Of a stretch of DNA of 64,000 nucleotides, positions 1-25,087 are shown in pieces. Within the stretch, counting starts at the first letter, position 1. Every line of letters starts with the position of its first letter. Source of the DNA: Paramoeba atlantica (Eukaryota; Protista; Discosea); the NCBI GenBank assembly GCA_977017575.1, contig CDRNVI010000142.1, forward strand, positions 12,953 to 76,952, given 5' to 3'. A program made the translations under genes and the position numbers. The notes below the pieces were generated by a model. That model was not told the DNA's origin. It did no database searches and worked only from the letters and a program-made list of their open reading frames with translations.

Positions 1-449
1 CACAAAAAGTGATGAGAATCGAGCGGTGTGTGGTTTTTTGTTTTTTGTTTTTGAAATTCAAAAAAATTAGATTTCCTTTTAGTTTGTTGATTCTTATTCT
101 TCTTTCTTTTTCTACTTGGTTTCAACTCCTTTTTTTACTTTTTTTTTCATCTGTCATTTGGAAGAGAAAAACACCTTCTTTCTTTTTGGTTCTGTTGGGA
201 ACAGTCAAGGCTCTATCAAGCACTGATACAAACAGATATGAGACTACAGAGAGAATTGGTCTTTAAGAACAAGTTTATTAACCTGACAGAGTTAGGTTGC
301 GATAACATTCGCAAGGAGCGTGACTCATGGCCAATCACCGGGTGATGTCCACGGAGCTTGACCAATCAATATGAGCCACATCAGATCGATCCACGGACAG
401 CAAACCAATCAATTGATGACACGCAAGTGGGACACTTATGGTGTCTACA

Positions 450-3339
450 GGAACCAAACAGAACCACCTCTTCTCTTCTCTTGCTCCAACCCCCCTGATC
501 TCTGTCTTTCTTTCTTCAAGCAAGATTTGGGTTTTTCCTTGTTTGTCTGTTTTGACTTTGCAGATGGTCCTTTGGAGATGATTCACTAAAACGCTTCAAA
601 AGCAGCCTGTCTTTGCTGCTCTGTGGAGTCACAAATAAAATTATTTCTTATTTTTCTCAACAAATCAATTTGATTTCAATAGATAAAAGAGTTCTTTTGC
701 TCTCCACTTTCACGTTTATTTATAATGTCGATCAAAACTGAGATTCCCAGGCTTGCCCAGACTAACTACTCTATATAGAAGAGTGCTGTTCATACACACA
801 AATCCATGCTGCAAATGGCTGGCATTACATCAGCAAGAACATTGAACCTAACACTGTTGATGGTCCTGAAAATATCAAGTCATATTGGACAGCAGCCTTG
901 CTCATAACATCCTCTGTTTCAAGCAAGTTGGCATATCTAGTCACTACCGAAAGTGATGAAAGATCATACAATCCGTCAGTTTCCTGGACGCACATCCTGC
1001 GAAGAAAGTCAAAGTGATCCGTACCAATAGTCCCAAAGAGTACAACACTTGGAGGTTATGTTCTTATTTGGATAGAAGAGGTATTCAGAAGGAAACATCT
1101 GTGCCCTACTGTCAATGTAAAGGAAGAAGTTTGAAAGCAAGGTGCAACAATATGCATTTTTCTTGGGATTGCACCAGAACACACACAGCAGATATCTTCT
1201 TCGTCCAATCAATAAGGAGGGAAAGACATCATCACCCAAGATGCTCATTTTCAAGAAATAATCTTTCCAAAACTTGAACCTCAATTTCTAATTTCACTCA
1301 AGCTCTCACTTTTCAACAGGTTTATATCTGAACTGTGAACCAAACGAAAGTATGGTCTCACCTTTGATTATTCTGAAGCAAAAAGAAGAGGAAGAGGAAG
1401 AAGAAAAGACTATCAGAGGATGAAGAAACTGAGGATGACACACCTCCTGGTACACTGCTGTTACAATCTGATCTTGTGATTGCAGGGGAGAATATATTTG
1501 ATGAGGATGATGAAGAAACCAATCACAATCCTGAGCCTAAAACGACTTTCCACCAGTTCAAAGAAGTTCGAGAGTAGTTCCTGTGCCAAACCATCATCAC
1601 CCCTTGATCTCATCTCTGAGATCACAAAGCCCCTGAGCCAAAATCCTTCAAACAAGCAATTGCATCAACTGAATTGGATAAATGGTTAGAAGCTATTAAG
1701 AAAGAGTGGTGGGATGCTTTGATTGAAAAAGAAACCTGGGAAGAGATTGACAAGAAGAAAGTTCCAAATCACCATTGTATTCTTCATCATCCTATCTGGA
1801 GATTCAAGAAGAAGCTCTATGGTCATTACAAAGCGGCCCGATTGTGTTTTGATGGTCGATTCCAAAAAGAAGGAGTTGGGGGTTTTGATGAGACTTTTTC
1901 ACACCACAGTCACACATCTTGAAGTTATTCGCATCATTCTGTCTATTGTTGCACTTGCTCGTGGTTGTTACATTGAGTTGGGAGATGTTTCAAACGCTTT
2001 CCTGAATCCCAAAGTCAACAAAGATGTCTACATGTCAACCCCACCAGAAGGTTTTGAATCTCAAGGGAGGGAAAGTCCCCAAACTAAAGAAGAGCCTCTA
2101 TGGATTGAAACAAGCTCCGAGACTGTGGAATGAAGACATTGATCAATTTCTACAACTGGAGATGAAGTTTAAACAACTCAAACTCAACAAATGTGTCTAC
2201 TCAAAGGTTGTACCTATGGAAGGTTTTGTTATAATTATCCTCTACATTGATGTGATTTACTTGTTTTATCTGTGCTACTAATGAAACAAACATTTGACTT
2301 GCTGGAGAAGAAGTTCAAAATTCAGAGAATGGGCAAACCTGATCAGTATCTTGGCATATGACATGCACTGGTTCCGAAGGATGGATGTGGAATTTATCTT
2401 TCTCAAGCAAACGTGATCTCCAAACTGCTCGATGCTTTCAAAATGCTGAACCTGAAACCAACCTCAACACCATACAACACTTCTGTGTCTCTTTAATTCT
2501 GAATGAAGATAACAAACCTTTTTTGATGTGAAGAAGTTTTGTCAAATTCTTGGCTCTTTGCTGTGGATTGCTCGGAACACTCATTCCTTCTTTCTCGCTA
2601 TGAGACGCAGCCAAAGGGTGCCTTGAAACATATTCTTCGATTCCTTTGTGGTCAAATGGATTTGGGGATTTCCCTGGGTGCAACAACAAATTCTAAACCT
2701 GTTTGTAATGCTGCATTAGAAATTTACTCTAACTCATCTTTTGCTGATCCTCAATAAAATCTTGGAAGTACCTTTGGATTTGCTCTGCTCTGCTGAATGG
2801 ATCGCCTGTTGCTTGGGGCTCAAGAAAACAAACACTCTGACTCCTACCTCTGCGGCTAAGGCCGAATTCATCGCTGCATCTGAAGCAGTCAAGGGTTGTG
2901 GCTGAAGTCTCTTGTGGCTGAGAACAGTTCAACAAACTCTTGGTGAAGACTCAATTCAAAAATTCACACTCGGACTTGATTCTCGTGCTGTTGTGGAGTT
3001 GATCAAACAACATAGTGCTCCTTTTTATGGAAAGACGAAACACACATTCACATATTCAAGCGCAATTTGTTGTTGTATCAGTTGGGTTTCTTTGATGTGT
3101 GAAGTGGATTCGTTCAAATGAAATCAGGCAAATCTATTCACCAAATGAATTGGAAGTAGTAAGTTATTCTGTGGTCTCTCTGCTCAAAGCTTCTCAAGGT
3201 GTGGGGGAGTGTTGGAACCAAACAAAACCACCTCTTCTCTTTTCTTGCTCCAACCCTTGATTCTCCATCATTCTGTGCACAAGAGAAAATGAGCGAAACT
3301 GGCGAGAAAAGAGCGTTTAGGTAACAGAAATCTGCAACA
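450..3339 (+). mobile_element. Degenerate Ty1/copia LTR retrotransposon (integrase-RT-RNase H order; gag/protease not recognisable)
   Basis: Integrase-like KVKVIRTNSPKEY..GIQKETSVPY (~1000-1110). Copia RT motifs KWLEAIKKEW..LIEKETW, YKAARLCFDGRFQKEG..FDETFS, DVSNAFLN..VYMS.PPEGF and KLKKSLYGLKQAPRLW (1674-2281). RNase H-like IYSNSSFAD..WGSRKQ..KAEFIAASEA..LDSRAV (2700-3121). Many stops and frameshifts. Confidence 0.9.
3201..3339 (+). repeat. Polypurine tract plus putative short 3' LTR of the copia element
   Basis: GTGGGGGAG (3201-3209) is directly followed by TGTTGG (3210); a candidate end CAACA lies at 3335-3339. The first ~45 bp (GGAACCAAACA.AACCACCTCTTCTCTT.TCTTGCTCCAACCC) recur at 450-495 as a likely 5' LTR remnant. 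Confidence 0.6.
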
Positions 3340-3444
3340 AAAATAAATGGATCATTTTTTGAATTTTTGAAACGTTCCAAAGATCAAAAATGAGAGAACT
3401 CTTTGTTGACTTTTCGCGAAATGAAACCAAAAAATAAGAATAAT

Positions 3445-6400
3445 TTATTCTTCCCTTTTTCTTTTACTTCCAGCTTTCACAGTTTTTTCCCTCTCAGAAC
3501 TTCGAACTCCCTCTCCTGATTCCCTCTTCCCCTTCCTTCTTGTGAAGACAAAGACGAAGATGAAGATGAAGACAAAGACAAAGATGAAGACAAAGACAAA
3601 GACAAAGACAAAGACAAAGACAAGACCAAGACAAAGATGAAGACAAAGACGAAGACAAAAGGGAGGGAGCAGGAGCAGCTCCTGCAGCAGGGCTTTTGCA
3701 CCCCCAGCAATTCCAATGGTGGTATCCAACAGATTGTGGTCATAGAGGTGTTTCTCATAAGCAGCCACCATCTTAAACATTCTGAGGAGCAAGTGGGAAC
3801 TGGACACGCGATTTGGTCTTCCGGGTGCTCATTTCATTGAACCAAGGATTGCACTAACTCTTCTTTCCCTTTGAGGGCCCACAAGTCTCCAAATGATGAG
3901 CACAAAGAAGGCAGAGAAGAGAGGTTGAATTTTGTTGTTTTTTTGTTCATGGTTTGATCAAAGCCAGAAAGTCATCTTTGTAAAACACAACCCCACAGAT
4001 TGGTCATTATATTTCAGGGATTGTGGACGACCCACAGCTCCTTTCGAGACACTCCATGATCCATGATCGATCAAGAAGAAACCATTTCACCAACTCAAAA
4101 AATCCACGGGCAACAATGCAAGCATATTCCCAGAGACAAGGGAACCGGATTTTCCATCGAACCAAAGAAAAAACATTTTCCACAATATTGGTGCCCAGAA
4201 TGGAAGTCTTGGTCAATTCAGAGGAGCGGGTTGGGTGTCATCCAAAAAAATCTTTCAGATTCTTCATGGTGGTTATCACTTGTGTGTTAAAAGTTATTTA
4301 ACACAAAATGCTTCTTGTTAGGACACCATTTTTTCCATTGCTGAAAAAGGTTCAAAACACTCTCAATCTCTTGGCATTGTGTTCAAACTTCGAAAGGCTA
4401 TTGTCCGAAACAACCTGATAAACATTTCAAATTGCTCGCAAATAAAGACACAAGGCAAGGCAAAAGTCCTTTTGTGTTGTCATGAAAGATATTGATATTT
4501 CGGTGTTTTTTGCGAATGATTCAAGATCCTCAATGTGGTTGACTAATCGCAGTACAGGGGAAATGGCTTGTTTTGTCGGATGGATGAAAGATTTTGAAAT
4601 CAAAAAAATTTAGCAACTGACCGTGCTTTTTCCAAATCAAAAAGAGATCTCTTTCAAACTCAGCAAAAACACAGGTAGGCTCATCTCCGTTCTTTTCATC
4701 TCATTTTCATCAAAGATGACACCATCGTCACCCTCTTTCTTCTTCTCTTCCTTCTTCACCATTGCACCAGCACTGGGGACTTTCTTCAGCATCATCACCA
4801 ACCATCATCATCATCAATTGGATAAAACATCCCCTCCAAACTAGTGAATGGGGGGGGATCATTATGGGAACCTTATCACCATCTTCCTCATCACCATCTT
4901 CCTCATCACCATCTTCCTCATCACCAACAGTCAGTGGTACCACCCTTCTTTGATCCATTGACAAGGGGGGAGGGGGGGTGATGGAACAAAGAAGAAGTTT
5001 ACGCCATTGATTTTTTCTTCTTCCGTTGTTGGGCTTTCAACAGAGAGAGGAGGGAGTTGGTCAATAAAAAAAGAGGAAACTCAAGGCACTTGTTCAAGAG
5101 TTGGTTTCTCCCTAACTTCACCAAATGAACGTAATCGAAGATGTGCAGAATCTTACTTTTCTTTTTTTTAAGATTTGTGAGATACTTGCCCGACCCTTTG
5201 AAACCATCCGTTGATGTCCATGTGACAAAAATCTCTTGTTTTTTTGAGAGCATCTTCGAGTTGTCCCACTTGTTTAAGCAATAATTGCTCTCCAGAAAAC
5301 CCAACTGTCGGGTAATAGGCCAGTTCAAGGGGCAGATAGTCCCACAATTTAAGATAAAGAAGAAGTGGTTCACCTTCTTTGCTAAGTCGTTCACATATGC
5401 GAAACAATTCGAACTTCTACTGCTGAAGTTCTCAACTTGAAGAGAAGAAACTCACAATATTTCTGACGCTTGACCAATCAACCGATTTGATGAGCGAAGA
5501 TAAAACCAACAACCCTGACCGAATTTCAATCTCATCAGAAACCAAACCTCCAAGAAATTTCGAATATTCCTAGTCCCCATTCAATTTTCATTCATCCCCA
5601 AACATTTTTCGAATTGCCTCACATTTCAGTGGAAGGTCCTCTTGAGAGTAAGGATCAATTGGGGGAAGAAACTCTTTCATCTTTGTAAGAGAAGGAGCAA
5701 AAAGATTGAATTTTGAGGGGGTTCAATTTCCAAATAGCCACCTTTGTTTCCTTGCCCTTGAAAACCTACTCCTACGAGTGTTCGAATTGTCTTCTTCCCA
5801 CCAACAAATAAGATGGAAGAGAAAAAGTAAAGAACATCTGGGTTCCATCAGGATTGCTCGACCATCAGGTGCTGCCAATGCCTTCAGTTGTTGCTCAATG
5901 AAGGGTGTAATGAAATGATTGAAACCAACGATCACCATACTTTTCGTTCGCTCTTTTCACTAAATCGAGGAGAGACTCATTATGATTTAATCCAAACAGC
6001 ATCCTCATTTTGTTCCAAATTATCCAGAGCCAAATATGTTGTTGGTGATGAATCACGCTCTTCAATTGTTTTTCGGCACTCGTTCTTACAATTTCCCTTT
6101 CACAAGTTCCTTGATAAAAAACCTTTAAAAAACTTTCTAAATCTCTTTTTTTTTTGAAAATAATAAAAAATAAAAAAATAAAATCTCTCTTCTGAAGAAA
6201 ATAAAATAAAATAAAACCTGAGTTGTTCGCTGGACAAAGCCTTCTCAAGTATGCCAATGAGCATCACAGGAATCACAAAGGAGGTTATACTTCCCATTTG
6301 TAATTTTTGGGAGACTATTCAACCAAACTGGATGGAAAAATTGAAAGAACACATTTGGGATCCATCCTTGATCAGACGACCAATACTCTGTGGGAGACCT

Positions 6401-8960
6401 TGAGAGCGATATTTTCGGGAAATGACACTTGAGCACAAGAATTCAATTTTTGAAGGAATACAATTATTTTCTGGTCTTTCAAAAATCCGCTACAAATCAA
6501 ACCATGATCACATTCATCTTACATTTGGAGGTTCTCAAGATCAAAAACCAGTTCGAGAAACAAAAACGGACAATCTCCAACGCATTGCAAGTAAAGGAAC
6601 ATGTGTTCAAAAGATATAAAAACATCTTATGAGCAGGTTTTTTCCGAAAACAGTCTAATCACATTGTTGTGTTGACCTCAACAAAATAACAACACCCGTT
6701 CTTTGAAGCAAAATTCAAATGTTTCTTCTTAGAAGAAGAAGAAGAAGAAGAAGAAGAAGAAGAAGAAGAAGAAGAAGAAGAAGAAGAAAGAGAGAGTTGA
6801 AGAAGAGAAGAGACAACTTCATCACCATCAGATTTTTGAGAAAACTGGGGGGGAGAGGGGAATCAAGCTTTACCTCCTTGGAGAAATTCTGGGAGAGGAC
6901 AACAGAAGACAGAGGCCCAAACATGGAGTTTTTGGAAGGTGCATTCCCATAACAAGACGACAAACACTGATATCCTCCTGGTTTTAGAACAACTATGTTG
7001 TTCACAAAATGAAAGAGTTTCATTAAAATTTTGAAAAGAGGTTCCTCTTTCAAAAACTGTCACGTAAGTTGACATCTTTCAAGGTCTTTCTGAATTGCCT
7101 GTGAAAAGACAGCATTCGCAAAGAGACAGTTCGAAACCAAAGGATGCAACTTTTCTTCCCACTTCGATTGCTCAATCAAACCTTGCGAGTATTCTCGAAA
7201 AACAAGAATTGCTCTCCCTTTAAGGGAGGCAAAAGGCGAAGAAGAAGTTCGCAACAACCTCCCGACAAAACCTCGATGCACAAACCGATTCTCATTTGCT
7301 TTCTCCCAAATGTAAGACCCTTCAATTTTCTTTGAACGAAACCGCTGGTAGAAATCTTCATCATCACAAATCATCTGATTCAGACCCCACCAATATTCCA
7401 ATCCTCCACAATCACCAAGATCAATCACAACAATCGTTTTAACTTGTGTCTCATCAAGATGTCTTGACATATCATCCATACGTACAATCAATTCCACACA
7501 AAGCCGAGAAAGATGGTCAATGGAAGAAAGATTTCGGGCATGTCGATATAACTCGTGTAATTTGTTGCGTAAATTCACATCCACAACTAATGTTTGAGCA
7601 AAAATCAAAGAATCCCAGGAGCAGTGTTAAAACAATTGCTGTTCGAAACCCTTGCTGATCCAATATCTGTTACCTTCCCAATAAATCGCCCACCAAACAA
7701 AGGCAAGAGAGCAAGAACCAATTTCTTTCTTTTTTCATCAGCAAGGCAAAGGGCCTCATCTGAGAGTTTTTGTGGTTCATACAAATTCAACCATTGTTGT
7801 TGTTGTTGTCCTTCACAACCATTCGATTCATTCAATTCATTCGATTCAAGAAATAATGATGATAATATCAATGATGAGCACTTTGCTTCTTTGTTGCTAG
7901 TAGCAGCAGCAGCAGTTCGAATTGGAGGAAGGAATCGAGGGGGAACAGGAGGTGGGGTGGTGTGACCCCCAGCAGCAGCCACAGAGGATGTTGAGGATGA
8001 CCCACCAACCACCACCATCACAACATTCAATTGGCAAAAATTTGTTCTCAGCTACCATTGCTTTTTTGGCTCCCATTTTAATCCAATCAGAGGCCAAGTC
8101 TCCAAAAGAAATTCTGAATAATGTTATATTTTAATAACAAAGTTTCAAAAAAATTTTGTGTGAAACATGGAAAAAAATGGTTATTAGTTTTTTGACTTAC
8201 TTGAAATCAGTTCCTTCTTCTTTCTTGAAATGTCCTCGAACATTTCCTTGACTGTTTTGAATTCATTGGAATCCTTGTATGAGTCGTACATTCTATGGAC
8301 ACTTCTGAAAGACACCAAAAAATTATTATTATCAATAAGGAAGAAAAAATCATCTCAAAAAAAAATCTTTCCTCCTCCTCCCCCCAACTCAACACTTTTT
8401 TTCTGTTCCTCCCCTCCTCCCCTCCCCTCCTTTTCTTTCCTTTTTTCAAAAAAAAATAATACCAATTCCTTGTTGAAGGGGACCAGCAAAACTGCTTCTT
8501 GTTACTGGCCTTGAATCCACTCTTCCCACCAACATACCACCACCACTGCCTATCATCATATCATCCCATTCAGTCCACATCAATAACCAAATTTTTTCAG
8601 GTGTTTTTTGGATTCCACTCGCTTTCAATTTTTGTCCAAGGAGCGTTTTAAGAGTCCCTTCCAAACGTTTTTTATTGGTTTCATTTTTGTGGTCCGGCAA
8701 ATTGAAAGAAAAATCTCGAAAAATCTTGAAAAATCTGTTCCACCAACCAACCGATAGTTACTCCCCTTCCGTTCTCACTTTTCCAACACCTTTTTTCAAT
8801 AATTCGAGACCTTCAATTTCAGTTCACTCTCCAAACAGATCTTGAGAAGATCATTGTGTTTCAAGGATCCTCAGCCTTCAAAGATGATTTGTAGAACTTC
8901 CGTTGCACCACTTGATAAAGAAGTCGCCTATTGGCTTCCTATTACTTGATGTTTTTAATA
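3445..8960 (-). pseudogene. Long degenerate intron-containing gene with P-element/THAP9-like transposase motifs and a C-terminal SAP-like/C2H2 region
   Basis: Protein-like minus-strand frames broken by stops and frameshifts. Motifs: SRHLDETQVKTIVVID (~7440, resembles P-type xDExxIK), RAILVFREYSQGL (resembles A..LVFM.RGL), GGYQCLSSCYGNAPSKNSMF (~6950, resembles G..V...DG..N..M), TSILGTNIVENVFSLVR (~4190, resembles QDxLENFFSxIR), LKGKEELVQSL (SAP-like) and a frameshifted CPVPTC..RMFKMVAAYEKHLYDH (C2H2). GT..AG introns at ~8200-8117 (GTAAGT donor) and ~6216-6137. No TIRs identified. Confidence 0.4.
6731..6787. repeat. (GAA)~19 microsatellite
   Basis: Uninterrupted AGA/GAA run; reads as poly-Ser in the minus-strand relic gene. 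Confidence 0.95.
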
Positions 8961-9752
8961 AAAATATGTTCTCCGTTATGGGTCAATGACCCTAACCCCC
9001 ACCACCCCTGCTTACTTTTCCACCATTCCTTTTTCCTTCTCTCTTCATCTGGCACGAACATGTCATATCTCTCTCTGCCTGGCAGCTCTCTCTTTTCTTT
9101 CTTTTCTTTATCTACGTTTTTCCCCTTCCTCCTCTCCTTTACTCTCTTAAATCAAACAATCATCTCAAAGCAAACCTGTTGTTTGTCTGTCATAAGTTCC
9201 TGCTGCTCACAAAAGCAAGTCGTTACTCACACACACACAACAGGTCAAGTTATCCCAAGACACAAGAATCGACCCCGCTGTTGTGTTGTGTTGTCCCCGC
9301 ACCAACCAAGCTTCTTCTGTAAAATATCTGCAATAAAACCTTGCTCAATCTTTGGGGATTCCTCTTCTTCTTTTGATCATCTCTTTGTTCTTCAGTTTTA
9401 AAATCATCCATCCCTCTCCTCTCCTATTTCATCATCTCACAATTATCCACACCCTCAACACCCAACACATAACCACACAATACCCAACACAAAGGTGTAC
9501 CCTTTCCCTCTCCCTCCTCTCTCCCCTTTCTTTTTTGTTTACAAACCTGTGCCAGTGTGATGTGTGATGTGTGATTACATTCAGCAATTTGATTCTGCAG
9601 GAAAAAAAAACACCAGACAATGCAAAGGTGAATCTGTTTCAGAAAATAAGATATGAATAAAAATGACAAAAAGGAAAGAGAAAAAGAAAAAGAAAAGAAA
9701 AGAGAAAAAGAAAAAGAAAAGAAAAGAAAAAAAGAAAAGAAAAGAAAAAAAG

Positions 9753-9779
<27 letters not shown>

Positions 9780-9783
<4 letters not shown>

Positions 9784-10212
9784 GAGTTTTTTCAAACTCT
9801 TCCGACACGATTTTCCAAAAAAAGAAACGTGAAGATCACGTGAATTCCGTTTCTCTCTTTTTCCATTTTATCTTTCCAAGATACAAAGACAAACTCGCAA
9901 GACTGACAGAAACTGAAAAACAAGAAAGGAAGGAAAGGCAATGCATGTACCAAAAGCGTTGGTACAACAAAAAAAGAAACTAACCTCTTCCTTCTTTACC
10001 TCCCCGGAAGTCCTCAAGGTTACAACAACAACCCTCATCATCCCAGGTTCTCTCTCTCTCTTGGCTTCTTTGTCTCATTACTTTCCTTTCAAACAGGCAA
10101 CAAATAATGAGGAAAGTCGCAACAAATTTGTTCGTTTTCTTTTTCTCTCTCTTCTCTCTTCTCTCTTCTCTCTCTCTTTTCTTTCTCTTTTCTTTCTCTT
10201 TTCTTTCTCTTC

Positions 10213-10244
<32 letters not shown>

Positions 10245-11984
10245 TCTCTCTTTCTCTTTCTCATTCAAATAAATAGAAAATCACCAAAAAAGAGAAATTC
10301 ACATATGGATATGAGAGGAGGTTTCTTTTCTCTCTTCTCTTTCTCCCTTCTCTTTCTCTCTTCTCTCTTCTCTTTCTCTTCTCTCTTCTCTCTTTCTCTT
10401 TCTCTCTTTCTCTCTTTCTCTCTTTCTCTCTTTCTCTTTTCTTTTCTCTCTCTCTCTTCTTTCTTTCTCTTTTTCCTTCTCAATAAAATTTTCTCTCCTC
10501 TTCTCCACTTCTCTCTTCTCTTCTCTCTTCTCTCTTCTCTCTTTCTTAGGAGCAAGGATGTCACACCCAAAACAATCAACAAATACGAATGAAGCAAGAG
10601 AAAAGGTTTTCTCTCTCCACTTCTCTCTCTCTCTCTTTTCTTTTCGTTTCTCTCTTTCTCTTTCTCTTCTTTTGCTTTCTCTTCTCTTTCTCACTTTTTA
10701 TCAAATCAGCTTTTTGAAGAAGAATTTCCTGTGGAACCCAAAAAATTTTTTACTCTTTTTTTGGTTCTGGGACTCAAATTGATGGTTTTCTCTCTTTTCT
10801 CTCTCTTTTCTCTCTCTTTTTTCTCTCTCTTTTCTCTCTCTCTCTCTTTTCTCTCTCTCTTTTCTCTCTCTCTTTTTTCTCTCTCTTTTCTCTCTCTCTC
10901 TTTTCTCTCTCTTTTCTCTCTCTCTTCTTCTTTTTCTCTCTCTCTCTTTCTTTTCTCTCTCCTCTCTATTCTCTTTTTCTCTTTTTCTCTTCTCTCTTTC
11001 TTTTTCAAATAATAATTTTTCTTTTCTCCTTTTTCTTTCTTTTTTCTTTCCTTCTTCTCTTTCTTCTCTCTCTCTTTCTTCTCTCTTTCTTTCTTAATCC
11101 AGTTTTTTATTTTCGGATTTTTGTGAAAAGATGAGAGAATCTTGGTTCTGTTCAAAACGGTTGGATTTGGGGCAGGTCCAGGGAAGCAAACTCGATCATG
11201 TCAAGTTCAGACAAACAAAAAGTGCTTTCTTCCATATTACTGGAATCAAAGTCTCAGTGACTGTCTCGAACACCTGACATTTCAAATCTCGAAGCAATCA
11301 TTACAATTCTCCTCACCAAACTTTTTCCTGATCTTCTCCAGGATCACATTTCCCGACATCCTCCTTCTTTGTTTTCAAAAGTCACTCTTACTTAGTCTCT
11401 CTTATCCTCGATCACCTTCAGAGGGACCATTTCAAGATTCGAAAGTTTTATTTTTTGGTTCACAACGTGCAATTCGGCCAGCAGGGCTTCCCACCCGACC
11501 ATCAGAAGAATACAAGAAATTGACCAAGAATGGAGGTTGTGGCCTTCATGTGGATGCAGAAGATCCAATTTACAACTCAGGTTTATTGATGTATTATTCC
11601 TGTTTCGTTGAACCAGATGTTGAAGATTGTGATCGTGATCATCCATTACCACAAAATGATTTGGTTTGTTTCCAACATCAGAATGGTGGAAGGGGGGCAC
11701 GAATTCAAACTATGCATCCTAACTTTCTATATCTTGCATTCCACCAATCTTGGAAGTGTCACGGCACAGTTTTTCAAGAGAATGATGTTTTTTAAGAAGG
11801 TATCCATGGTTTCCGGGTGGTAACTTATCCAATCAAAGCAGTCGAAAATCTTGTTGAACATTGTCAAGATGAAGCCCCATTTCAGTCTGTCCTCCAACAA
11901 TGGAAGACTGCCCTTCTAAATTCCTCTTCTCCAAAAAAATTGCAATGTGGCCTTGATCAAATCTTCAACAAAACTTTGGAATAA
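9780..11984 (+). pseudogene. Multi-exon gene ending in a 2OG-Fe(II) dioxygenase-like domain, best resembling TET/JBP
   Basis: ORF 11142-11795 contains GCGLHVDAEDP (HxDxxD) and SWKCHGT (distal His). After an in-frame TAA at 11793-11795 the same frame continues EGIHGFRVVTYP..KTLE to TAA 11982-11984. Small AG/GT-bounded exon-like islands sit among CT-rich introns at 9780-10790. The exon chain is not fully resolved. Confidence 0.45.
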
Positions 11985-13329
11985 AGTAACCCTTTCCTTC
12001 TTTCAACTTCAACTACTTTCAAGGATGTGATAAATCTTTTTTGGCAACATGTCTTTCTCTTTCAAATAATTTGACTCAAAGCAAAAACTACAAAAATAAA
12101 TTCTCTTCACATTATTGGCAAACTTCAAGGAGAAATAGGGACTCCTGCACCACGGGGCGGTTCTGTAATATTTGCAAAAAGCAAAAACTTTGGAAAAGTG
12201 AAAAAGAAATTCGAAGCGGAACAACACATATTTTACCCATATAAGGAAATTCTGAATGGGCTTTATTTTTCTTTCTTTTCCTTTATTTTCTGAAGGAGAA
12301 AAGAAAAGAGAAAAGAGAAAGAAAGAGGAAGAAGGAAAGTGAGAGAAGAGAGAAGGGGTGAGGCAAGAGGAAAAGGGGGAAGAAAAAGGAAGGGAAGAGA
12401 AGAAAGAAAAGAAGAGGAAAGAGAAAGACGAAGAAAAAATAGAGAAAATGCCAGTCGGGGAAAAGGGAGTTGGATTGTTCAGTGGGAATGGATGTGTGAG
12501 AATGGCTCCAAAATGAATGGACAAAACAAGAACTGATAGAATCGTAACAGGGAGGAAAGAAATAAAAGTTAAATCTTTAAAGAAAGAGAGAAAAAGAAAA
12601 GTTGAAGAAAGAGGAGGGTGGTCAGGATTTCTTTGGGTTCTTTTGTAAACAAAAATGATGAGGGAATAAGTTGGTGGTTTGTTGTTGTTTGTTGTGATTT
12701 TTTGAAGTGAAAACTTTGTTGTTGTGGTTCATGTGGTTCAACATAAATAAAAGAAGGAGAAGGATTTTGTTTCTTCTTTCTCTTTTGTGGTGATGAAGAT
12801 GAAGAGATGGCTGAAAAACGTGATGATGATTGTGAGCGTAGCGGTGATGGTGGTGGCCCTCTCAGATTTGAATCTCCCGAATTCAGAAACAAACTTCCAG
12901 CGGTGAGACAACAACACTGACAACCAAAATTGCGAGCAAAACGAAATAAAAAAAAAGTCTCTAATTTCTTCTACATCCAAGAAGAGAGTCCCTTCTTCTT
13001 CTTCTGCCACCGCAACACCAACACCAACCAAACTTTATTTCTTTTTTATTCAACGAAACCCCTAAACCCTTCGAAAAATAATAAAAAAAAAGATTTCAAC
13101 ACAAAAAGAGATTCCGAAGTGTTCATGTTTCAAACACTTGGTGTTTGCAGTTCAACAGACTACCCACACACATAGTTTTACCGCTGCTTTTTGATTTCAT
13201 TGAATTGCTCAAAGAAAAAAGATATGCAAAGCAAATCCAAATATCACTTTAACCTCAAAGAGTTAATTTTCTTTTTGGTTTTTAGTTTTTCAATGCATCG
13301 AGGTTTCACCATGTTTCGTCGACAAATCC

Positions 13330-16300
13330 TCACAATATTCCTCTCTTGGCAATGACAAAAGACTTTGAATTGTTGATTAAATCACGAATAATCTCGGTGA
13401 ACTGGAGAAAGAGAAAAGAGAAAAGGTTAGTATTAAAAGGAAGGAGAGGGAAAGGAAGGAGGGAAAGGAAGGAGGGAAAGGAAGGAGGGAAAGGAAGGAG
13501 GGAAAGGAAGGAGGGAAAGGGGAGGGATTAGGGGAGGGATTAGGGGAGGAGAATAAAAGAAAACAAAACTCTGAAAACAAACTATTTCATATAACAGTTA
13601 TGCAATGATTGTGGTGGTGATTAATGTGGCAATCCCAACTTCAAACCCAAAGAGAGACCAAAAAAAAAAAGACAGCGAGAAAGGTATCCTATCAGTGGGT
13701 CCCTTCTCAAACGGAGGACTGGAGAAAGAGAGAAAAAGAAAGAAAGGGGTTTAGTTGAATGGAGGGAGAAAAGGGAGGAGGGGTGAACACAAAGAAGGGG
13801 AGGGAGAATAAAAGAAAACAAATATCAAAAACAAACACTAAAACCAATGTGATTCGCAATAACAATGTGACGATGGTGTGGAGGCAGTGATAAAAGGTTT
13901 CAAATTGTTGATTAAATATGTTACCGATAATCTCAGCGAACTGGAGAAAGAGAAAAAAGAAAGGATTTTTTAGTTAAAAGGAGAGAGGGGAGAAAAGGAG
14001 ACAAGGGAGGGGGGGGGGGAACACAAAGAAGGGGAGAATAAAAGAAAACAAGTATGTGAAAAACAAACACAAAACTGATGATTCACAACAACAATGCGAT
14101 GATGGTGGCAGTAGTAATCCATGGCATATTTGTAAAGCACTCTATTGATTTAACAAACAATCTCTCGATATTGATAAATCGATGTCCATTCACCTTGCAA
14201 TCCGACACACAATCACTTTTGCGCAACAACATTCCAAGAGCTCTCTGCAACACAGTTGCTTGATCGTCACTCTAATGTTGTTGTCATTTTGATTATCGCA
14301 TTGCGAAGAATCTTTTCTTCTGATACAAACCCTATATGCAAAAGTTTCAGAAGCTACTCTCTTTCCTTTAAAGAAATCACCACCACCTGAACCTTCTTCC
14401 TTTGCTCCCCTCACCCTTCCCTCTCTTTTCTTCTAAAAAGACCAAAAAAAAAAAAAAGAACCTCTTTGTGTGAAGAAGAAATCAGCAACAAACACACTCA
14501 ATATTCCCTCTCTCCTCCTTTGTTGGTGTTGGTTATTGAGTTGTTCTCATTGTTGTCTCACGTTTTATCGTGTCCTCTTTTTTTGTTGGAAAGAGAGAAA
14601 AAGAAGGAATTCCCAATTAAATAATCTTTTTCCTCTAGGCCAAATACGCAAGTTTGCAAATCTCCGAAGGATTAGTGGCAAATAAAAATTATCTCAATAA
14701 ATTAATACCAAAAATAATTTTCTCATTACCAAGAATTTTCTTGATTTGCTACCAGACCCAAAGTACTGAAATTATTCAACAGAAAACACCCAATCTTTTG
14801 GTCGATTGAATGACTGAACTTTTTTCAGGAAACTGAAAAGAGAAAGAAAAGAAAAAAGAAAGGATTAGTAATGTGTGTTACTATGGAGGAGGGAAATACA
14901 AAGAAGGAAGAGAATAAAAGAAAACAAACAAAAAAAAGAAAACAAACACAAAACCCACCATGATTCACAACAACAACGATAATTGGTAAAGGTGAAAAAA
15001 TTATCACTTCAAACCTTATCAATTAAAACCCAACAAACACACACACAGGCGAGAGAGAGAGAACTCTGGAGAAAGAGAAAAGAGAAAAGATTAATGTTAA
15101 AAGGAAGGAAGGGGAGGAGGGAAAGGGGAGGGATAAAATGAATGTGGCAATCTTTATAATACATGCACACATCATTGATATTTGACAAACAACCTCTCAA
15201 TAATCGATAAGGGTTTAGGGTGTCCATTCACCTTGCAATCCAACACACACAAACACTTTCGTGCACAACACTCTCAACACTCTCCAAGAGTGTGCTTTGA
15301 GAGAGCAAAACATAGCCAGGACCAAAAAATGGAGCCCACACCAGCAAGTTAGAGAAAGGCACTGGTTTGTCAAAGTAAAATCATGCACAGTTAATCCCAA
15401 CTACTTCCAAGGAGAAAACTCACGGGGGTTCCAGAGTTCCATCGAAAAATCCCAACTTCAAACCCAAAGAGAGACAACCAAAAAAAAAAACAGCGAAAAG
15501 GGTGTCCCCCTGGTATGTCCCTTCTGAGAAAAACAGAAACTGACTGGAGAAAGAAAGGGGTTTCATTGAATGGAGGGGGAAATATGAGGGAAAAACACAA
15601 AGAAAAAGAATCAAAGAAAACATATATGACCAAAAACAAACACTAAAACCCAATGAGATTCACAACAACAACAACATGATGGTGGAAGTGGGGTGATAGA
15701 GCACAGAGCAGGGCATCCTCCAACAAACTCAACAATCAGACATTAACAAAAACAAACTCTCGGTTTAAGTTCTCCTTTTATATTAAGAATTCTATGAATT
15801 TCCAACAAACATCTTAACAACAAAGGAACAATACAACAGCAATTTGTGATGAAACACAAATAAAGACCATCCAAAATGCTCCCTAAACCCTTTTGGGAAA
15901 ACCGGAAGGAAACACACAAAACAACACATCAAATCAGGAAGCATCTTTGTGAGTTGCAACACACACACACACTTTGATATTTTTAACAAACAATCTCTCA
16001 ATATATTGATAAAGGGTTTAGGGTGTCCATTCACCTTACGATTGGTGGGGGGAGGGGATGTGGCAGGAAGGAACTAAAAGGGAAAGAGAAAAGGAAAAGA
16101 TTAGTGTTCAAAGGAATGAGGGAGGGAGAGAGGGGGGAAAAGAGGAAGAGAATAAAAGAAAACAAACATAACAGTTATGCAACGATGGTGGTGGAGATCA
16201 ATGGCAATCTTTGTGACATATTTGATAAACAATCTCTCGATATATTGATAATATTGGTGTCCATTCACTTTGCAATCCAACACACAAACCCTTATCAATT

Positions 16301-18620
16301 AAAACACCTCACAAACCTGATGAGAACTGAAAGAGAAAAGAGAAAAGAGAAAAAAGAAAAGAGAAAGGATTTCGTTCAGTTCAATGTAAGGGGGAACAGG
16401 GAAGAAATACAAAGCAAAACAAAAACAAAACAAAAACAAAAATAAAACCAATGAATTTTACAACAATATATTATTATAGAAGTGGTGGATCAATCAAAAC
16501 AAAAAAAAACAGAGAACTGCCAGTTCAAAAAACAAAAAAAGAGAGAGAGAAAACCAGATGATTGTTTGGGGCTTTTGAAAAATTATTGTCGAATATTTTA
16601 GGAACAACACACGTCGTGAAACAGCAGCACACTTCCGGAACACAAGAAGTCAAGAAATTATCCAACAATAACAATGACATCTCTCTTTTTTTTAAAAAAA
16701 CATAATCAGGAAAAAAGAGAGAAAAGAGAGGGAAAAGAGAGGGAAAAGAGAGGGAAAAGAGAGGGAAAAGAGGAAAGAAAAAGAAAACCAGAAAAGGAGA
16801 GTGAACACACAACAAAGCCTTTGAAGAAGAGAAACATGATTCTTTTTTTTAACAAATATATTTACTTGCTGATTACAAAACTCATCTCCCTTCAAAAAAA
16901 AAAATCAGTTTGGAACAACAATTAAAAGAAAAGAAAAAGAAAGAGAAAGAGAAAAAAGAAGAAAAGAAAGAAAAGAAAAGAAAACCAAAAAAAACATTGT
17001 AAAAACTGTTCAAACTAAGGAAACAAAATTTTAGAATCTTATTTGGTGAGAAGAAAGAGAACAAAAAGGACATCAAGAGGAGGGGGTAGGAGAAAACAAA
17101 AAGAAAACAGAAACAAAAAAGAAATGATCTATCAATCGTCAAACGAATGGAGAGAAAAGACAGTCAAACCAAAAAAAATCAAAACAACCACCTTTTATCA
17201 TGAAAAGGAGGGGGGAACACAAAAGGAGGAGAATAAAAGAAAACAAAAAGAAAAGAAAACAAACACCAAACACCATGATTCGCAATAATAATAATTGGTA
17301 ACGGCGAGATATTATCGCTTCAAACCTTATCAATTAAAACCCCAACAAACACCCACAAAGAGAAAGAGAGAACTCTGGAGAAAGAAAAAAGAGAAAAGAT
17401 TAGTGTTAAAAGGAATGAGGGGGAGAGAGGGAGGAAAAAGAGGAAGAGAATAAAAGAAAACAAACCCTTCATATAACAATGCAACAATGATGGTGGATCA
17501 ATGGTTTCTTTGTGACACACACTACTGATATTTGACAAACAATCTCTCTTAATATTGATGCAATTCAACACACAAACACTTTTGCACACAACAACAACAC
17601 TCCCCAAGAGCTCTTTGCAACACAACAGCAAAGTGTATTGCTTGATCATCACCTAAAACCCTTTCAATCAAGACCCACATCTTGAATGTGGGAATAGCAG
17701 CAGCAGTAATAAGTGGTTTTAAAATCCTTATCAATTAAAACACCTCACAAACCCTGATGAGAACTGAAAGAGAAAAGAGAAAAGAGAAAAGAGAAAAGAG
17801 AAAAGAGAAAAGAGAAAAGAGAAAAGAGAAAGGATTTCGTTCAGTTCGACGGAAGAAATACAAAACAAAACAAAAACAAAACAAAAACAAAAATAAAACC
17901 AATGAATTTTATAATAATATATTATCGAGGTGGTGGATCAATCAAAACAAAAAAAAAACAGAGAACTGCTAGTTCAAAAAACAGAAAAAAAGAGAAGAAA
18001 GAGAAAGAAAACCAGATGATTGTTTGGGGTTTTTGAAAAATTATTGTTGAATATTCGGAACAACACACGTCGTGAAACAGCAGCACACTTGCGTAACACA
18101 AGAAGTCAAAAAATCATCCATCAACAATGATGACATTCTCTCTTTTAAAAAAAACATAATCAGGAAAAAAGAGAGAAGGAGAGAGGAAAGATAAAAGAAA
18201 ACCAGAAAAGGAGAGCGAACACACACAACAAAGCCATTGAAGAAAAGAAATACGATTCTTTTTTTTTAACAAATATATTTATTTCCTGATTACAAAACTC
18301 ATTCTCCCTTTGAAAAAAAATCAGTTTGGAACGACCAATTAAAAGAAAAGAAAAAAGAAAAGAGAAAAAAGAAGAAATGAAAGAAAAGAAAAGAACGGAA
18401 AAAAATTTGGTAAAAACTGTTCGAACCAAGGAAACAAAATTTCAGAATCTTATTTGGTGAGGAAAAAGAGAACAAAAAGTGCACCAAGAGGAGGGGGCAG
18501 GAGGAAACAAAAAGAAAACAGAAACAAAAAAGAAATGATCCATTGTCGATCAAACGAACGGAGAGAAAAGAGAGAGAAAAGACGGTCAAACCAAAAAAAA
18601 CAAAATGACCATCTTTTCAC
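13330..18620. repeat. Mosaic array of interleaved, diverged repeat modules
   Basis: Recurrent modules include ACTGGAGAAAGAGAAAAGAGAAAAG.TTAGT.TTAAAAGG (13400, 13940, 15065, 17375), CCAACTTCAAACCCAAAGAGAGAC (13635, 15452) and GATATTT.ACAAACAA.CTCTC..TA..GAT...GGGTTTAGGGTGTCCATTCACC (14150, 15180, 15975, 16225, 17530; some copies partial). Confidence 0.8.
16290..18620. repeat. Direct duplication, two ~0.9-kb copies offset by ~1.44 kb
   Basis: 16290-17200 and 17726-18620 align from CCTTATCAATTAAAACACCTCACAAACC through GTCAAACCAAAAAAAA. Confidence 0.85.
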
Positions 18621-20807
18621 GCGAAAAAGCAATTCATCATCTATTTTTAGCACTCTAAAATATATGTCAGCCTTTTTACTACCTTTTGGCTTTGGAGTAG
18701 ATGAATTTTTATATTTTATTTTTTATGTTTTTTTCAATAAAACGAAAATAACAAAAATACTCATAAGAAAATCTGATTCGATATTTTGCCGCCCAAAAAT
18801 CTTTTATTTTTTGTATTTTTTTTTGTTTTTCGCCTTGAAAAACATGCTGTTGCTTGTTCGGGGGGGATGGAGGGAGTCGCGGTCAGGGGGGCAAAGGGAA
18901 AAGACTTTTTTTGCTTCTTTCAAACAACTCTTTTTTTGTTTTCTTTGTGTGTGTAAAAAAAAGAGAAAAAGAGTTGATCTTGATGAGGTGAGAGATCGCT
19001 TCAAAGACCACACGCAGAGAGAGGAAGGAAGAATTGTGGTGTGGATTGCTCAGAACTCAGAACATTATCCCTCCCCTATGTGATCAGGTTTTCTTCTTTG
19101 TTTCCTCTCAGTGTTTTTTTTTTTTTTGTCCTTTCTCTCCTCTTTTCCCCCCTTTTTTTTTTGGTTTTTGATCTCTTTTCCTTTTGTTTGTGTGTCTTTT
19201 GTTTGTGTGTGTCTTTTGTTTGTGTGTCTTTTGTTCGCCACCCTAAACCCTTGTTTTTCACACTTGTTTTTGTCATGTTTATTTTTCCTTTCTTGGGTAT
19301 CATGATGGATGAGGCTTGAGATGCGGTTCTCTTCATCCTTTTGTTTGTCTTGTCTTTTTTATTTGTTCTTCTTTCTTTGTTCTTTTGTTTGTTCTTTTCT
19401 TTATTGTCTTTTTGTGTCCTCTTTGCTCTTCCTTTTCCCCCTTTTCCCCCTTCCCTTTCACTCTCCCTTCCCTAAACCCTTTTCTGTTGCGAACCCCTAC
19501 CTTGTTCTGTTGTCTTCTATTCATTTTGAAGTCTTTCTCACTGCTCTTTCCTGTCGAATCTCCCCCGTCGATTCTCCCCTCTTCTGTTTTTCTACTGTCT
19601 CCTTTCTTACCTTTTCCTCAAAAATTTGTTTTCTCACTTTGATTGTTCTTTCTTATTTGGAGTGTTTTCCTCTTTTGTGTTTTTCCCTCTCTTTTGTCTT
19701 TCGTTGGTGCTTTGTGCTCCTTCAACCCTGCCTGCTGTGTTTTGATTCATTTTTGTTTTTTGTCACATTTGATTTTTTTCTGTGTTTTCTCTCTTTGAAT
19801 ATTTTCTCTTTTGTTCAAAACCCTATTCTTTTTTTTGTTGTTGTTGTTCCTTTTATTTGATATAAACCACACCTTCTGCTTTTTCGATTTGATCTTTGGA
19901 TTGACTTTCGTTTATTGTTTTGTTGTTTTTCTGTGGAGATCTCATCAATCCTGACATTTTCCCTTTCCCCTCCCCCCCAAATCTTCGCTTCCCCCTCTTT
20001 TCCTTTTCTCTTTTGTTGATATCTCCCCATTTTTACTTTAATAACCTTATTCTCTTTCTTCTCTCTTTCTAAACCTTTTTTTCTTTCAATAGAGTGTAGT
20101 TGTGGGGCAGAGGAAGTTTTTCTCCTAATTTGTCGTCATTGCAATCTTTTTCTCTTTCTTTTTTTTCAATCTCTTTTTTGCAAGTACTTTTTTCTTTTTT
20201 TTTTCATTTTCTCTTTCTCTTTCTCTCTTTTAAAGAAATAAAATAAAATAATCAATTATTGCTTGTTTGGGGGAGGGTGATGGAGGGAGTCAAAGTTAGG
20301 GGGGCAGCAAGGGGAAGAGACTTTTTTTTGCTTCTTTCATCAAACAACTCTTTTTTTGTTTTCTTTGTGTGTGTAAAAAAAAGAGAAAAAGAGTTGATCT
20401 TGATGAGGTGAGAGATCGCTTCAAAAACCACACGCGGAGAGAGAAGAAGGAAGAATTGTGGTGTGGATTGCTCAGAACATTATCCCTCCCCTATGTGATC
20501 AGGTTTTTCTTCTTTGTTTCCTCTCAGTGTTTTTTTTTTGTTTTGGTCCTTTCTCTCCTCTTCTCCCCCCTTTTCTTTTTTTTGGGTTTTTGATTTCTTT
20601 TCCTTTTGTTTGTGTGTCTTTTGTTTGTGTGTCTTTTGTTCGCTTTTTTTTTTAAGGTTCAGACACCAGGTGCCATTTATTAGAGTTAAAAACCATCTCT
20701 AGGATGGAAAAGAGGGGGGAAGAAAGGGGGGGGGGAGGGAAGATAAATTAAGAGTTAGATCCAAAGATCTCTTCAGCATGGGATGCATTGGAGTTTCTTT
20801 ACCAACT

Positions 20808-23800
20808 TTAGTTCTCACTAAGGGGTCTGCGTTTGATTGTTCGCCTTCTAAAACCAGGGAGTGAATTCGGTTTGGAGGTTTCTATGAAGTTAATTACATT
20901 CCTTCGAAAATCTTCCTCGATAAAGCTCCTCACCAGATTGCTCTCTTGGGACTGATGGAACCATCCTTGGATATCTTTAGTAATTATTACAGGGAGAATT
21001 AGAGCATTCTCAAGAGCAGTTTGGGTCGGAAACAAAACATGGGGGGTTGTCACCGTGTTTCCTTGGAATTTCCTTACAAAATTCCCTGGGGGGATGGGGA
21101 AAGTCCAGTCACGGGTGAGGGGGGAATTGATCCAGTTCCACAGGGTTGAATTCAAAATAATCCACTCTTCACTGGTTTCTGCAACATGTTGTGATCTTGG
21201 ATCCCAATGATGATCATTCACAGCACATGTTCCATCCTCTTTAGACCAACTTGCAGCAGTTGCAATTGCATCAGCTCGCTTGTTAAGTTCTCGGGGTACA
21301 TGGATGAATTCTATCTCGTCAAAGCACATTGCTAACTTACGGATTTCACAAAGTAGTTCATTCAAGGCATAGTTTTTGATGGCATGGGTTTTGGGTGCAG
21401 CCTTGGTGAGAATCATACAATCCCCGACAACTTCAATCTCATTTGTCATTGATCTGGCACATTGCATTCCTTTCAAACAGCCTGTAAATTCACCAATATT
21501 GTTGGACCCAAGAGGGATGGTTTCAAACCCACCACAAATCTCTTTCCCTTCCCTGAAAACTGCAAAGCCTGCACCCCCCAGATGAGGATCTGTACGGTCT
21601 GAACCGTCATAAAACACTTGAAAGCCTTTAAATTTAAAACTTTCCTTCTCTTTGGTTCCTTTCTTTGTTTGGGTTCTTGGGGGCCGAGGGAGGATTTTGT
21701 TCTTTCTCAAGATTTTTTCGAAAATTTCAGTAGCATACTGGGGTGATTTCGATCCTTCCGCACACACTGTGAGCCACAAACTCAACAGGGCAACACTCAC
21801 CACAGAGGTTTCTTGTCTGGTGAGAAAATTTGAGACAAGGCCACACACATTCTTAGTTTCTTGCCAGCTGGGTACATTCAACAAAATACATTTCCTTCCC
21901 ATTGCTTGGAGGAGGCCCTCAGCCACAGAACATTCCTCCAGAAGATGAGATCGTGACTCCTTTTCACGGTGGCAGAGTCGGCAACTTGAGTTTTGGTTTG
22001 TGAAGTGAGCCAACTTGTCTCTTGTAGGCAGCCCTCTTATTAGGAACTTAATCAAATTCCTCTTAAGTTGGGGCCTAATTGCATGTGCCAAGTTGTACAC
22101 CACACACTCAGCTCTTCCTTCACCCACATACAGATCTTTGATTTCAATGGGAATCACTCGAGACATATTGGAATAAGCAACTCGAGTGGCCTGGCCAAAC
22201 ACAACTTTGGTAGAGAGGCTTTGGGCTGCAAAAAGGGCATCCTTTCGCATGGCTCCAATGGAAAGAGGACTCTGATAATCGCTCCTCATTGGTGGACGAG
22301 AAGTGAGGAGGGCCCAGTTAAAAACAATTGGATGGCGCAGTTGGGGGTTTGAGTCCAAGGGAGGATAGCATGAGGTAAGAATGGAGGTTTTTGTGTTGGC
22401 ATAGGCACCCAGAGCTGAGCGGATGGACTTCCACATCAAGGAGGCGACAGATTTTGGAATCAGTTTGAATCTCGCTAAATATCCCATGCATGGAGTTAGA
22501 TAGGTATTGACCATCCTTACTCTCGAGCGAAAATTGCCACCCCTTTTTTTGATTGCTGCTCCAACTTTCTTCATCTTTAGGATCACTTTCTCCCAATCCT
22601 TAAGAGGAGATAACCGTTTACTCAACCTCACTCCCAGGTATACAGTTTCATCACCACAGTAATTGGATCTTGCCATCTCAGCCCAGGGGCCTACAGGTTT
22701 GAAAGACTCAGTTGAGAGGACAAAGCACTTATTAAAATTCAGTTTAGCTCCAGTCGCTTCTTCATATTTCTTGAAGGTTGGAGTGAGAGAATTGATGGTT
22801 TCAGCTTTCTGAATCACCATCCCCAAGTCATCCATAAAGCCTGATAGGTCTTGGGGGTTGTATTCCTTCTTCAAGCTCACCAGGAGGATGTCAAACACGA
22901 TTACAAACAGGAGGGGGGAGATCGGGCATCCTTGTCTAACACCAGTTCGACTTTGGATTGAATCATTGTTGCCTCCCCTCTTGGATCCACCAATATTCGG
23001 CAGCCAGGTTACAGATTCTCGAAGCACCTTCTCAACAACATAGATCGCTTGAGGGGGGGCATTCAAACCTTTGAGAATATGAAGAAGTGCATCACGATTC
23101 ACATAATCATATGCCTTGCAAAAGTCTGTTTGGAGGAGGGTCACGTCTTTCCCTTCTGCCAGAGCTTCATAGAAAGAGTCATACACTGATTCCACTGCTT
23201 CGTCAATTGACCTCCCCTTAAACATCGCATGCTGTTCTTTAGAAATTACTCCACTTGCAATCTCCATCAGCCATTTTGCCCAATATCTCATCACAATCCG
23301 ATAATCTGAATTGGTAACACTGATTGGTCGAAATTGGTCAGGGCGGGGGATATTCTCGACTTTGGGAATCAAACAGAGTTGGCTCTCACCAAAAGAGGGG
23401 GGGAACTCCATAATCTCACCCGCTTGTTGAATTAATTCCACCCACATGTCAAAATACTTTTCTTGTGTCGCCTTATATAAAGAGAAAGGGATACCATCGG
23501 GTCCTGCGCTGGTGTTATTGGTTCTCTGAAGAAGTTTATCAACTTTCTTCCTGTCAACATCATGTCTCTCAACTGGGGGAAAGCGAGGATGATGGTCAGC
23601 AATCAGTTCGTCGAGAGAATCCTTGTTATATGGTCTTTCTGTACTGAGAAGGCTCTCCCAAAAGTCCTTAATTGCTTTTTTAACCACATTATCATCACGA
23701 GAGATCACTCCATCTACAATTACACCTTTAACACGGGGAGAAGATTTACGACCAGGGCGCGAGGGGTGTTCATCCACAAAAATTCCGAGTTGTTGTTCGA

Positions 23801-25079: not shown

Positions 25080-25087
25080 TCTTTCCT

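Follow-up and report, generated by a model that had tools for sequence, protein, structure and literature searches.

In fungi, dioxygenase genes of the TET/JBP type have been captured by several transposon lineages, and the abstract of Kojima (2025; PMC12730594) names Kyakuja-Dileera-Zisupton (KDZ), Plavaka, hAT, Harbinger, IS3EU, EnSpm, ESTA as well as Helitron; lineages given in that abstract do not include the P superfamily. TET/JBP proteins of protists include JBP1 and JBP2 of kinetoplastids and TJ1 of dinoflagellates, which carry the signatures HxD and H---R, and the dinoflagellate proteins were found with the PF12851 domain in HMMER searches that were run iteratively (bioRxiv 10.1101/2023.11.30.569493). 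Here we describe region 3445-11984 of a 64-kb stretch of DNA from Paramoeba atlantica (contig CDRNVI010000142.1; the whole stretch is called the window). It holds, within 7.8 kb and on opposite strands, a relic resembling transposases of the P/THAP9 superfamily (4157-5545, minus strand) and the relic of a dioxygenase of the TET/JBP fold (11148-11981, plus strand). A first-pass annotation of the window had proposed that the two genes form a transposon-borne module which modifies or erases 5-methylcytosine (5mC). Our analysis led to a different reading, to which we assign a probability of about 0.68: the region is non-functional debris within a transposon-rich block that spans 20 kb or more, exists in multiple copies and holds two unrelated gene fossils.

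The resemblance to the fungal transposon-borne genes lies in the position of a TET/JBP-fold gene near the relic of a DNA transposase in a repeat-rich region. In addition, the structural neighbours of the dioxygenase family in the AlphaFold database (AFDB) are such fungal Tet-like proteins, one of them KDZ-associated. In fungi, however, both genes reside in one element bounded by terminal inverted repeats and present in many independent copies, whereas the locus described here has no such termini and its two relics occur jointly only in one duplicated block with a length of 20 kb or more.

The plus-strand dioxygenase relic

Positions 11127-11981 of the plus strand form a single reading frame with one internal TAA (11793-11795) and a natural stop at 11982-11984. 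When homologues were aligned to the window with tblastn, similarity extended from 11148 to approximately 11980 and was continuous across the TAA. A reassigned codon was ruled out for this position, as all five other copies of the locus have CAA there. The pattern HxDxxD..HG..RxxxY, which had been noticed in the first-pass annotation, was recovered with HVDAED at 11547-11564 (His 11547-11549, Asp 11553-11555), the distal His of a CHG motif at 11760-11762 and RVVTY at 11814-11828. A GFGAGPG block (11163-11183) and a GGR motif (within 11682-11696) belong to the same frame.

The homology starts immediately after a CT-rich low-complexity tract and includes the domain only from the GxGxGxG block on, which corresponds to approximately residue 125 of the modelled full-length domain; in NgTET1, the aligned part comprises residues 132-321. 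The N-terminal strands and the helix that pack on the core in full-length relatives are missing, which leaves the window copy without a complete catalytic domain. A tblastn search of the window with the N-terminal 100-145 residues of seven relatives gave no match at E ≤ 20. The dioxygenase of the window is a truncated pseudogene and differs from the solved TET/JBP enzymes in lacking the N-terminal third and in being dead.

A phmmer search with a 222-residue piece retrieved 25 cluster representatives at E ≤ 1e-3 among 1.84 billion. The close relatives were versions of this one locus only and did not form a multi-copy, transposon-like set, in a database that includes at least five contigs of this organism. 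In the family alignment H136, D138 and D141 are invariant, R112, G182, R184 and H207 are nearly invariant, and the distal His is conserved in at least 90% of the 21-24 members. The Arg of the RVVTY motif (11814-11816), located 18 residues past the distal His, is replaced by Lys in many members (GMKIV); the nearly invariant Arg of the GGR block could serve as substitute ligand of 2-oxoglutarate. Pfam scans of 21 members at E ≤ 10 returned no family, neither Tet_JBP (PF12851) nor 2OG-FeII_Oxy_6 (PF20515), and sequence searches of solved structures with single pieces and with the family profile yielded nothing relevant. The ESM-Atlas score of the dioxygenase piece (0.77) was uninformative, a further protein search with the family profile returned close kin of the first sequence only, and a search for JGI metagenome loci with a single protein found nothing.

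The fold was approached through models that were calculated with AlphaFold2 (AF2) for two proteins. P0001 is a JGI protein of 280 residues, 98% identical to the window and without internal stop; its model reached a predicted local distance difference test score (pLDDT) of 81 and a predicted template modelling score (pTM) of 0.77. The second model covered residues 140-652 of the full-length family member P0014 (pLDDT 78, pTM 0.84). When the P0001 model was compared with 48,161 representatives of the PDB by VIA-align, NgTET1 (Z 8.9), CMD1 (Z 7.0), TET2 (Z 6.7) and CcTet (Z 6.1) ranked first to fourth, followed by AlkB types with Z of at most 5.4. With the P0014 model the same four proteins occupied ranks 1-4 (Z 12.4, 12.2, 11.2 and 10.8). 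Among AFDB clusters, the P0001 model matched Tet-like oxygenases of fungi, one protein associated with a KDZ transposase and one from Naegleria. The P0014 model was matched best by Tet-like oxygenases of fungi (E from 4e-8 to 4e-6), with a 'thymine dioxygenase' model of Perkinsela type as a weaker neighbour at rank 27. For the P0014 model, the shape search of the ESM-Atlas gave a PF12851 Tet_JBP cluster as best match, with a template modelling (TM) score of 0.68 by the hit. In all five libraries used, the best matches of both models were nearly all 2-oxoglutarate- and Fe(II)-dependent (2OG-Fe(II)) oxygenases.

Two results obtained with the P0014 model count against the assignment to TET/JBP: the margin, clear for the core model, was narrow here, with an ALKBH3/AlkB type at Z 10.5 versus 10.8 for the lowest TET/JBP protein, and Foldseek on the PDB placed FTO first, with a poor TM score of approximately 0.25. 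Foldseek with the core model of P0001 gave weak generic 2OG matches only; the TET ranking was seen with VIA-align. Homology to FTO was ruled out, given the lack of an FTO match in Pfam and the VIA-align rank of 21 for FTO. According to the two models, the plus-strand domain represents a divergent family of the TET/JBP-type 2OG-Fe(II) fold that is missed by curated sequence profiles, in agreement with the fold proposed for it at first pass.

The family shares with NgTET1 (5cg8), human TET2 (9hxv, 4nm6), Chlamydomonas CMD1 (7cy4) and Coprinopsis CcTet (7vpn) the double-stranded beta-helix, the iron-binding triad of HxD and distal His, and a last strand that bears a basic residue, Lys in many family members. 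Sequence identity to these four proteins is only about 10%, and the family has blocks of its own which set it apart from the solved TET/JBP enzymes, namely the upstream GxGxGxG, GGSGLHVDxxDP, GGR, HLHGSVFP and, at the C-terminus, a long bundle of helices. In contrast to dinoflagellate TJ1, family members do not match PF12851. For the full-length relatives, the substrate predicted from the fold is a methylated pyrimidine of DNA, either 5mC or T.

The full-length members (P0007, P0014, P0017, P0046 and relatives; loci L007-L012) comprise 600-790 amino acids and originate from marine metagenomes and MMETSP transcriptomes. The helical bundle follows their oxygenase core, and they carry no Pfam annotation. 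These members are intact and are ordinary host genes of marine protists. At L007 the family gene is located between a hydrolase and an ABC transporter gene, L008 and L009 have a HEAT-repeat neighbour in common, and genes for PIP5K and an HMG-box protein lie nearby at L009. No transposase was found at L010-L012.

The minus-strand relic, a probable transposase

The catalytic core of the minus-strand relic (4157-5545) is spread over several frames and interrupted by many stops. Its candidate catalytic residues lie in LVSDEIEI (5545-5522; first Asp 5536-5534), TSTDG (5217-5203; second Asp 5208-5206), the D(2)H block DYVHLVKLGRN (5136-5104) and ENVFSLVR (4180-4157; Glu 4180-4178). TSTDG was read by eye and stood outside the shuffle test. 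Each of the other three patterns occurs once in the six frames of the 64 kb, in every case on the minus strand, and they follow one another from N to C. When the window was shuffled 200 times with its composition preserved, their chance rates per shuffled window were 0.775 for LVSDEIEI, 0.005 for D(2)H and 0.055 for ENxF, and in none of the 200 did D(2)H lie within 2 kb of ENxF on the same strand.

According to PMC8230255, the P superfamily is marked by the order D-D-E and by a [C/D](2)H motif that follows the second Asp. The first Asp and D(2)H are 133 codons apart in the relic versus 109-110 in human THAP9 and the P transposase of the fly; D(2)H and the Glu are separated by 319 versus 192-199 codons, approximately 120 more. 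In its candidate D, D, D(2)H and E blocks the relic resembles both proteins as to order and approximate spacing, as well as in K..RN and EN.F..R. The K..RN continuation after D(2)H would fit P/THAP9 rather than CACTA. The relic differs from P element transposase and THAP9 in its many stops, its longer D(2)H-to-E spacing and the lack of terminal inverted repeats, of a profile match and of a THAP finger. No THAP zinc finger appeared in Pfam scans of the minus-strand stretches in 5600-8051, which could be a consequence of decay, and scans of every open reading frame (ORF) or stop-free stretch in 3984-11984 gave nothing usable. Profile matches to Tnp_P_element or TET_JBP, two of the profiles that the first-pass annotation had named, were likewise lacking at E ≤ 10. 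In the ESM-Atlas, the nearest named clusters for the piece 5002-5451 were all TNP-like RNaseH_N/GBD (PF21787/PF21788).

Taken from these motifs, the minus-strand relic is probably a P/THAP9-type transposase. From the first reading of this strand, the P-element-like motifs stand, with three patterns in order on one strand; the identity of the gene is probable.

Copies of the block and their decay

The two genes had been described as starting about 0.8 kb apart. The homology cores are in fact separated by 5.6 kb (5545 versus 11148), the N-terminal part of the dioxygenase being absent, and no stretch in 5600-11100 matched any protein family. Six versions of the locus were compared, the window and loci L001, L003, L004, L005 and L006, the five loci being taken from a single metagenome assembly of long reads at ENA; positions 10101-10299 were left out of the copy comparisons. 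The four other versions with both relics (L001, L003, L005 and L006) are collinear with the window over approximately 20 kb, far past 3445-11984. Blastn and megablast showed 94-98.5% identity over a minimum extent of 1144-20643, and collinearity ran from about 450-1144 to at least 20643, the ends of the fetched sequence. For L003, the match resumes at 27238-28607, beyond a long interspersed nuclear element (LINE) present in the window only. Since collinearity reaches far beyond 3445-11984, these versions are alleles of a large block or its segmental duplicates and not transposon copies, and they are uninformative on transposition of an 8.5-kb unit. They are deduced to be paralogues rather than population haplotypes; against this stands that a single metagenome assembly cannot separate paralogues from strain haplotypes.

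Loci with different flanks (L002, L004, L007-L012) contained no P-like part. L004 is a rearranged derivative that keeps the CT-rich tract and the 3' part of the dioxygenase. L002 is a paralogue with 50-60% identity in which the N-terminal part is present; it comes from another assembly and lies in DNA of 44.6% G+C, with a Ty3/gypsy element on the upstream side of the dioxygenase and, downstream, a gene that contains a GREB1-type helicase domain. No P-like sequence was found within 10 kb on either side of the L002 dioxygenase. Judged by these sequences, joint copying of the two relics took place only within a larger block, 20 kb or more in length, and they would not constitute a mobile or functional unit. 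As far as public sequences reach, the transposon-borne module of the first-pass annotation thus did not hold: copies with other flanks are unlinked, and those with both relics share about 20 kb. Shared termini or target site duplications of the two genes did not emerge either; the search for terminal inverted repeats gave only low-complexity inverted matches in 1-10100, and no 8-bp duplications were identified.

The dioxygenase ORF is broken in five of the six versions, in different ways. The window carries the change CAA>TAA at 11793, and L001, L005 and L006 have a common CGA>TGA at 11409. In addition, L001 has a 1-bp insertion after 11476, L005 and L006 a 1-bp deletion at 11382 and L006 an extra stop at 11865. 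In the partial copy L004, 5 bp are inserted and a stop stands at 11752. Only L003 retains the ORF of 280 codons, as does the JGI protein P0001. Across the versions, nonsynonymous and synonymous changes stood at 41:13; there is therefore no sign of purifying selection, and the dioxygenase copies drift neutrally. Being truncated, stop-bearing and subject to neutral evolution, the window copy cannot modify anything, and the proposed activity on 5mC falls away for it.

Substitutions were counted over 8,580 aligned columns in five versions (window 2829-13547 versus L001, L003, L005 and L006). C>T or G>A accounted for 312 of 351 private substitutions, next to 24 reverse transitions and 14 transversions. 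CpG sites contributed 23% of the changes versus 8% of the cytosine contexts, a 2.7-fold enrichment; the 77% of changes outside CpG showed a slight excess after T only. L003 had one private change in 8.6 kb and its nearest relative, the window, 43; the range over all versions other than L003 was 43 to 144. There was little strand clustering (runs tests P = 0.03-0.49), on which basis single strand-coordinated deaminase events were rejected as source of hypermutation. The shared variants are mutually incompatible with one tree, which suggests exchange between copies or recurrent hits. The first-pass annotation had seen CpG decay in the elements of this genome. This is not specific to them, as the ratio of observed to expected CpG is 0.39-0.51 throughout the window, the intact LINE included. 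The TAA of the window and the shared TGA are products of the C>T-biased process. The pattern suggests that a strong process of the cytosine-deamination type or similar to repeat-induced point mutation acts on repeated DNA.

The preferred course of events would be as follows. A transposase relic of putative P/THAP9 type became broken by many stops and frameshifts, and a dioxygenase relic kept the double-stranded beta-helix core with its iron ligands (HxD and the distal His) and the C-terminal R/K-x-x-x-Y strand. The N-terminal third of the catalytic domain was presumably lost before the block multiplied. The two relics would have been duplicated together because the whole block was copied or inherited, and the copies then drifted under strongly C-to-T-biased mutation, the source of the TAA in the window and the TGA in three other copies.

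Among the alternatives, an eroded composite cut-and-paste transposon with TET/JBP cargo, mobilised by a P-like or other transposase, could have lost its termini and later been included in a larger duplication. The occurrence of both relics on opposite strands within 7.8 kb is in line with it, and so is the documented capture of TET/JBP genes by many transposon superfamilies in fungi, as far as the abstract of PMC12730594 covers them. We consider it improbable in view of the missing inverted repeats, the 5.6 kb without recognisable coding sequence between the cores, the presence of the dioxygenase without the P-like part in L002 and L004, the conserved synteny of the closest full-length relatives as host genes and the retrieval by phmmer of versions of a single locus. 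If it were true, a transposon-borne TET gene would be recorded for the first time beyond fungi, and in a superfamily outside those of that abstract; the locus should not be counted among TET-carrying transposons unless it is tied to an intact family. Less probable still is that the 280-codon ORF encodes a working minimal oxidase in some copies, of which the window would be a null allele. The retained ORF of L003 and P0001 weighs in this direction and against debris, together with the MMETSP transcript ORF P0027, which carries the 3' half and matches the intact version exactly over its final 131 residues, and a run of probable RNA from 2015 in which 34% of the sampled words were present; in view of the transcript and this run, the dioxygenase locus is probably transcribed. 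All metal-ligand motifs are retained as well. On the other hand, the ORF starts inside the catalytic domain, the other five versions were broken independently with a ratio of substitutions that fits neutral drift, and L003 is intact simply owing to its near lack of private mutations.

The assignment of the minus-strand relic, as distinct from the reading of the region as debris, faces the objection that the motifs arose by chance or belong to another D(2)H superfamily (hAT, CACTA, Transib or Mutator). Several points weigh in favour of this objection: the P/THAP9 patterns were written after the sequence had been seen, seven translated pieces of the relic had no Pfam match at E ≤ 10, the P-like piece found only its own allele among 5.8 billion proteins (within the length range), and its ESM-Atlas score of 0.84 was below the threshold of 0.9 and is a lead only. 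Moreover, the [C/D](2)H motif is common to several superfamilies (PMC8230255). We nevertheless regard the objection as unlikely to be right, with more to commend it than the two alternatives above. Three single-occurrence patterns in catalytic order on one strand, the absence of the D(2)H and ENxF pair from the shuffled windows, a first Asp-D(2)H distance not far from that of the fly and human proteins, and the uniform TNP-like RNaseH_N/GBD sets in the ESM-Atlas all point to P/THAP9.

With both relics read as fossils, the locus amounts to ordinary debris. As a modest by-product, the dioxygenase relic pointed to a small TET/JBP-fold family in marine protists that is divergent, unannotated and undetected by Pfam, and whose intact representatives belong to the host genes. 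The C-to-T bias among the copies, seen in all sequence contexts and with one copy almost untouched, is relevant to the way in which this organism silences or degrades its repeats.

Surroundings of the two relics

Region 3445-11984 is eukaryotic DNA of approximately 38-40% G+C, rich in low-complexity arrays, and has no second copy within the window. That both genes are decayed and embedded in a transposon-rich block, as stated at first pass, proved correct; an intact LINE (20808-27145) and a Ty3/gypsy relic (approximately 35.6-39.5 kb) lie in the surroundings. The LINE insertion (20644-27237) appears intact, with an ORF1 of 685 amino acids and an ORF2 of 1423 amino acids that contains endonuclease, reverse transcriptase, zf-RVT and RNase H domains. 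It is missing from the otherwise collinear L003 and is therefore a recent insertion polymorphism. An Rfam scan of the window yielded a single tRNA (59696-59777), a megablast search of a phage collection gave no match to the window, and telomere repeats were found neither in the window nor in the fetched loci.

Directly 5' of the dioxygenase relic, Tandem Repeats Finder detected A-rich and then CT-rich low-complexity arrays on the plus strand (9669-11095), of which approximately 1 kb of CT-rich repeats abuts the relic. A tract similar to the CT-rich one, read as KRKRK/EKR on the minus strand, is located just upstream of the dioxygenase gene in L002, so that long pyrimidine tracts precede the gene in both loci. 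The GC skew of the window is -0.33 to -0.41 over 8-12 kb and +0.30 in 12-18 kb, where the AT skew rises up to +0.47; the plus strand switches sharply near 12 kb from CT-rich to purine-rich.

L002 belongs to another organism. Its TET/JBP-fold gene and the gene with the GREB1-type circularly permuted superfamily 2 helicase domain (PF20692) lie 4 kb apart (10001-11415 and 15204-16580), and the dioxygenase gene is interrupted by an insertion or intron of about 240 bp. GREB1-type proteins have been linked to DNA-base glycosylation.

The longest stop-free stretch of the region, 188 codons on the minus strand (7063-7626), matched no Pfam family and reached at most 0.77 in the ESM-Atlas. It is conserved in the collinear copies only, and no tie to the transposase relic was found. 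Its VIDLGDCGG block (VIDLGxxGG) is weakly similar to motif I of S-adenosylmethionine (SAM)-dependent methyltransferases, and methyltransferase clusters were scattered among its ESM-Atlas matches; these sequence features hint weakly at the relic of such an enzyme. Structural variants inside the block comprise 2029-2829 and 6398-6786, which are present in the window and L003, missing or replaced in L001 and L005, and possibly represent small insertions.

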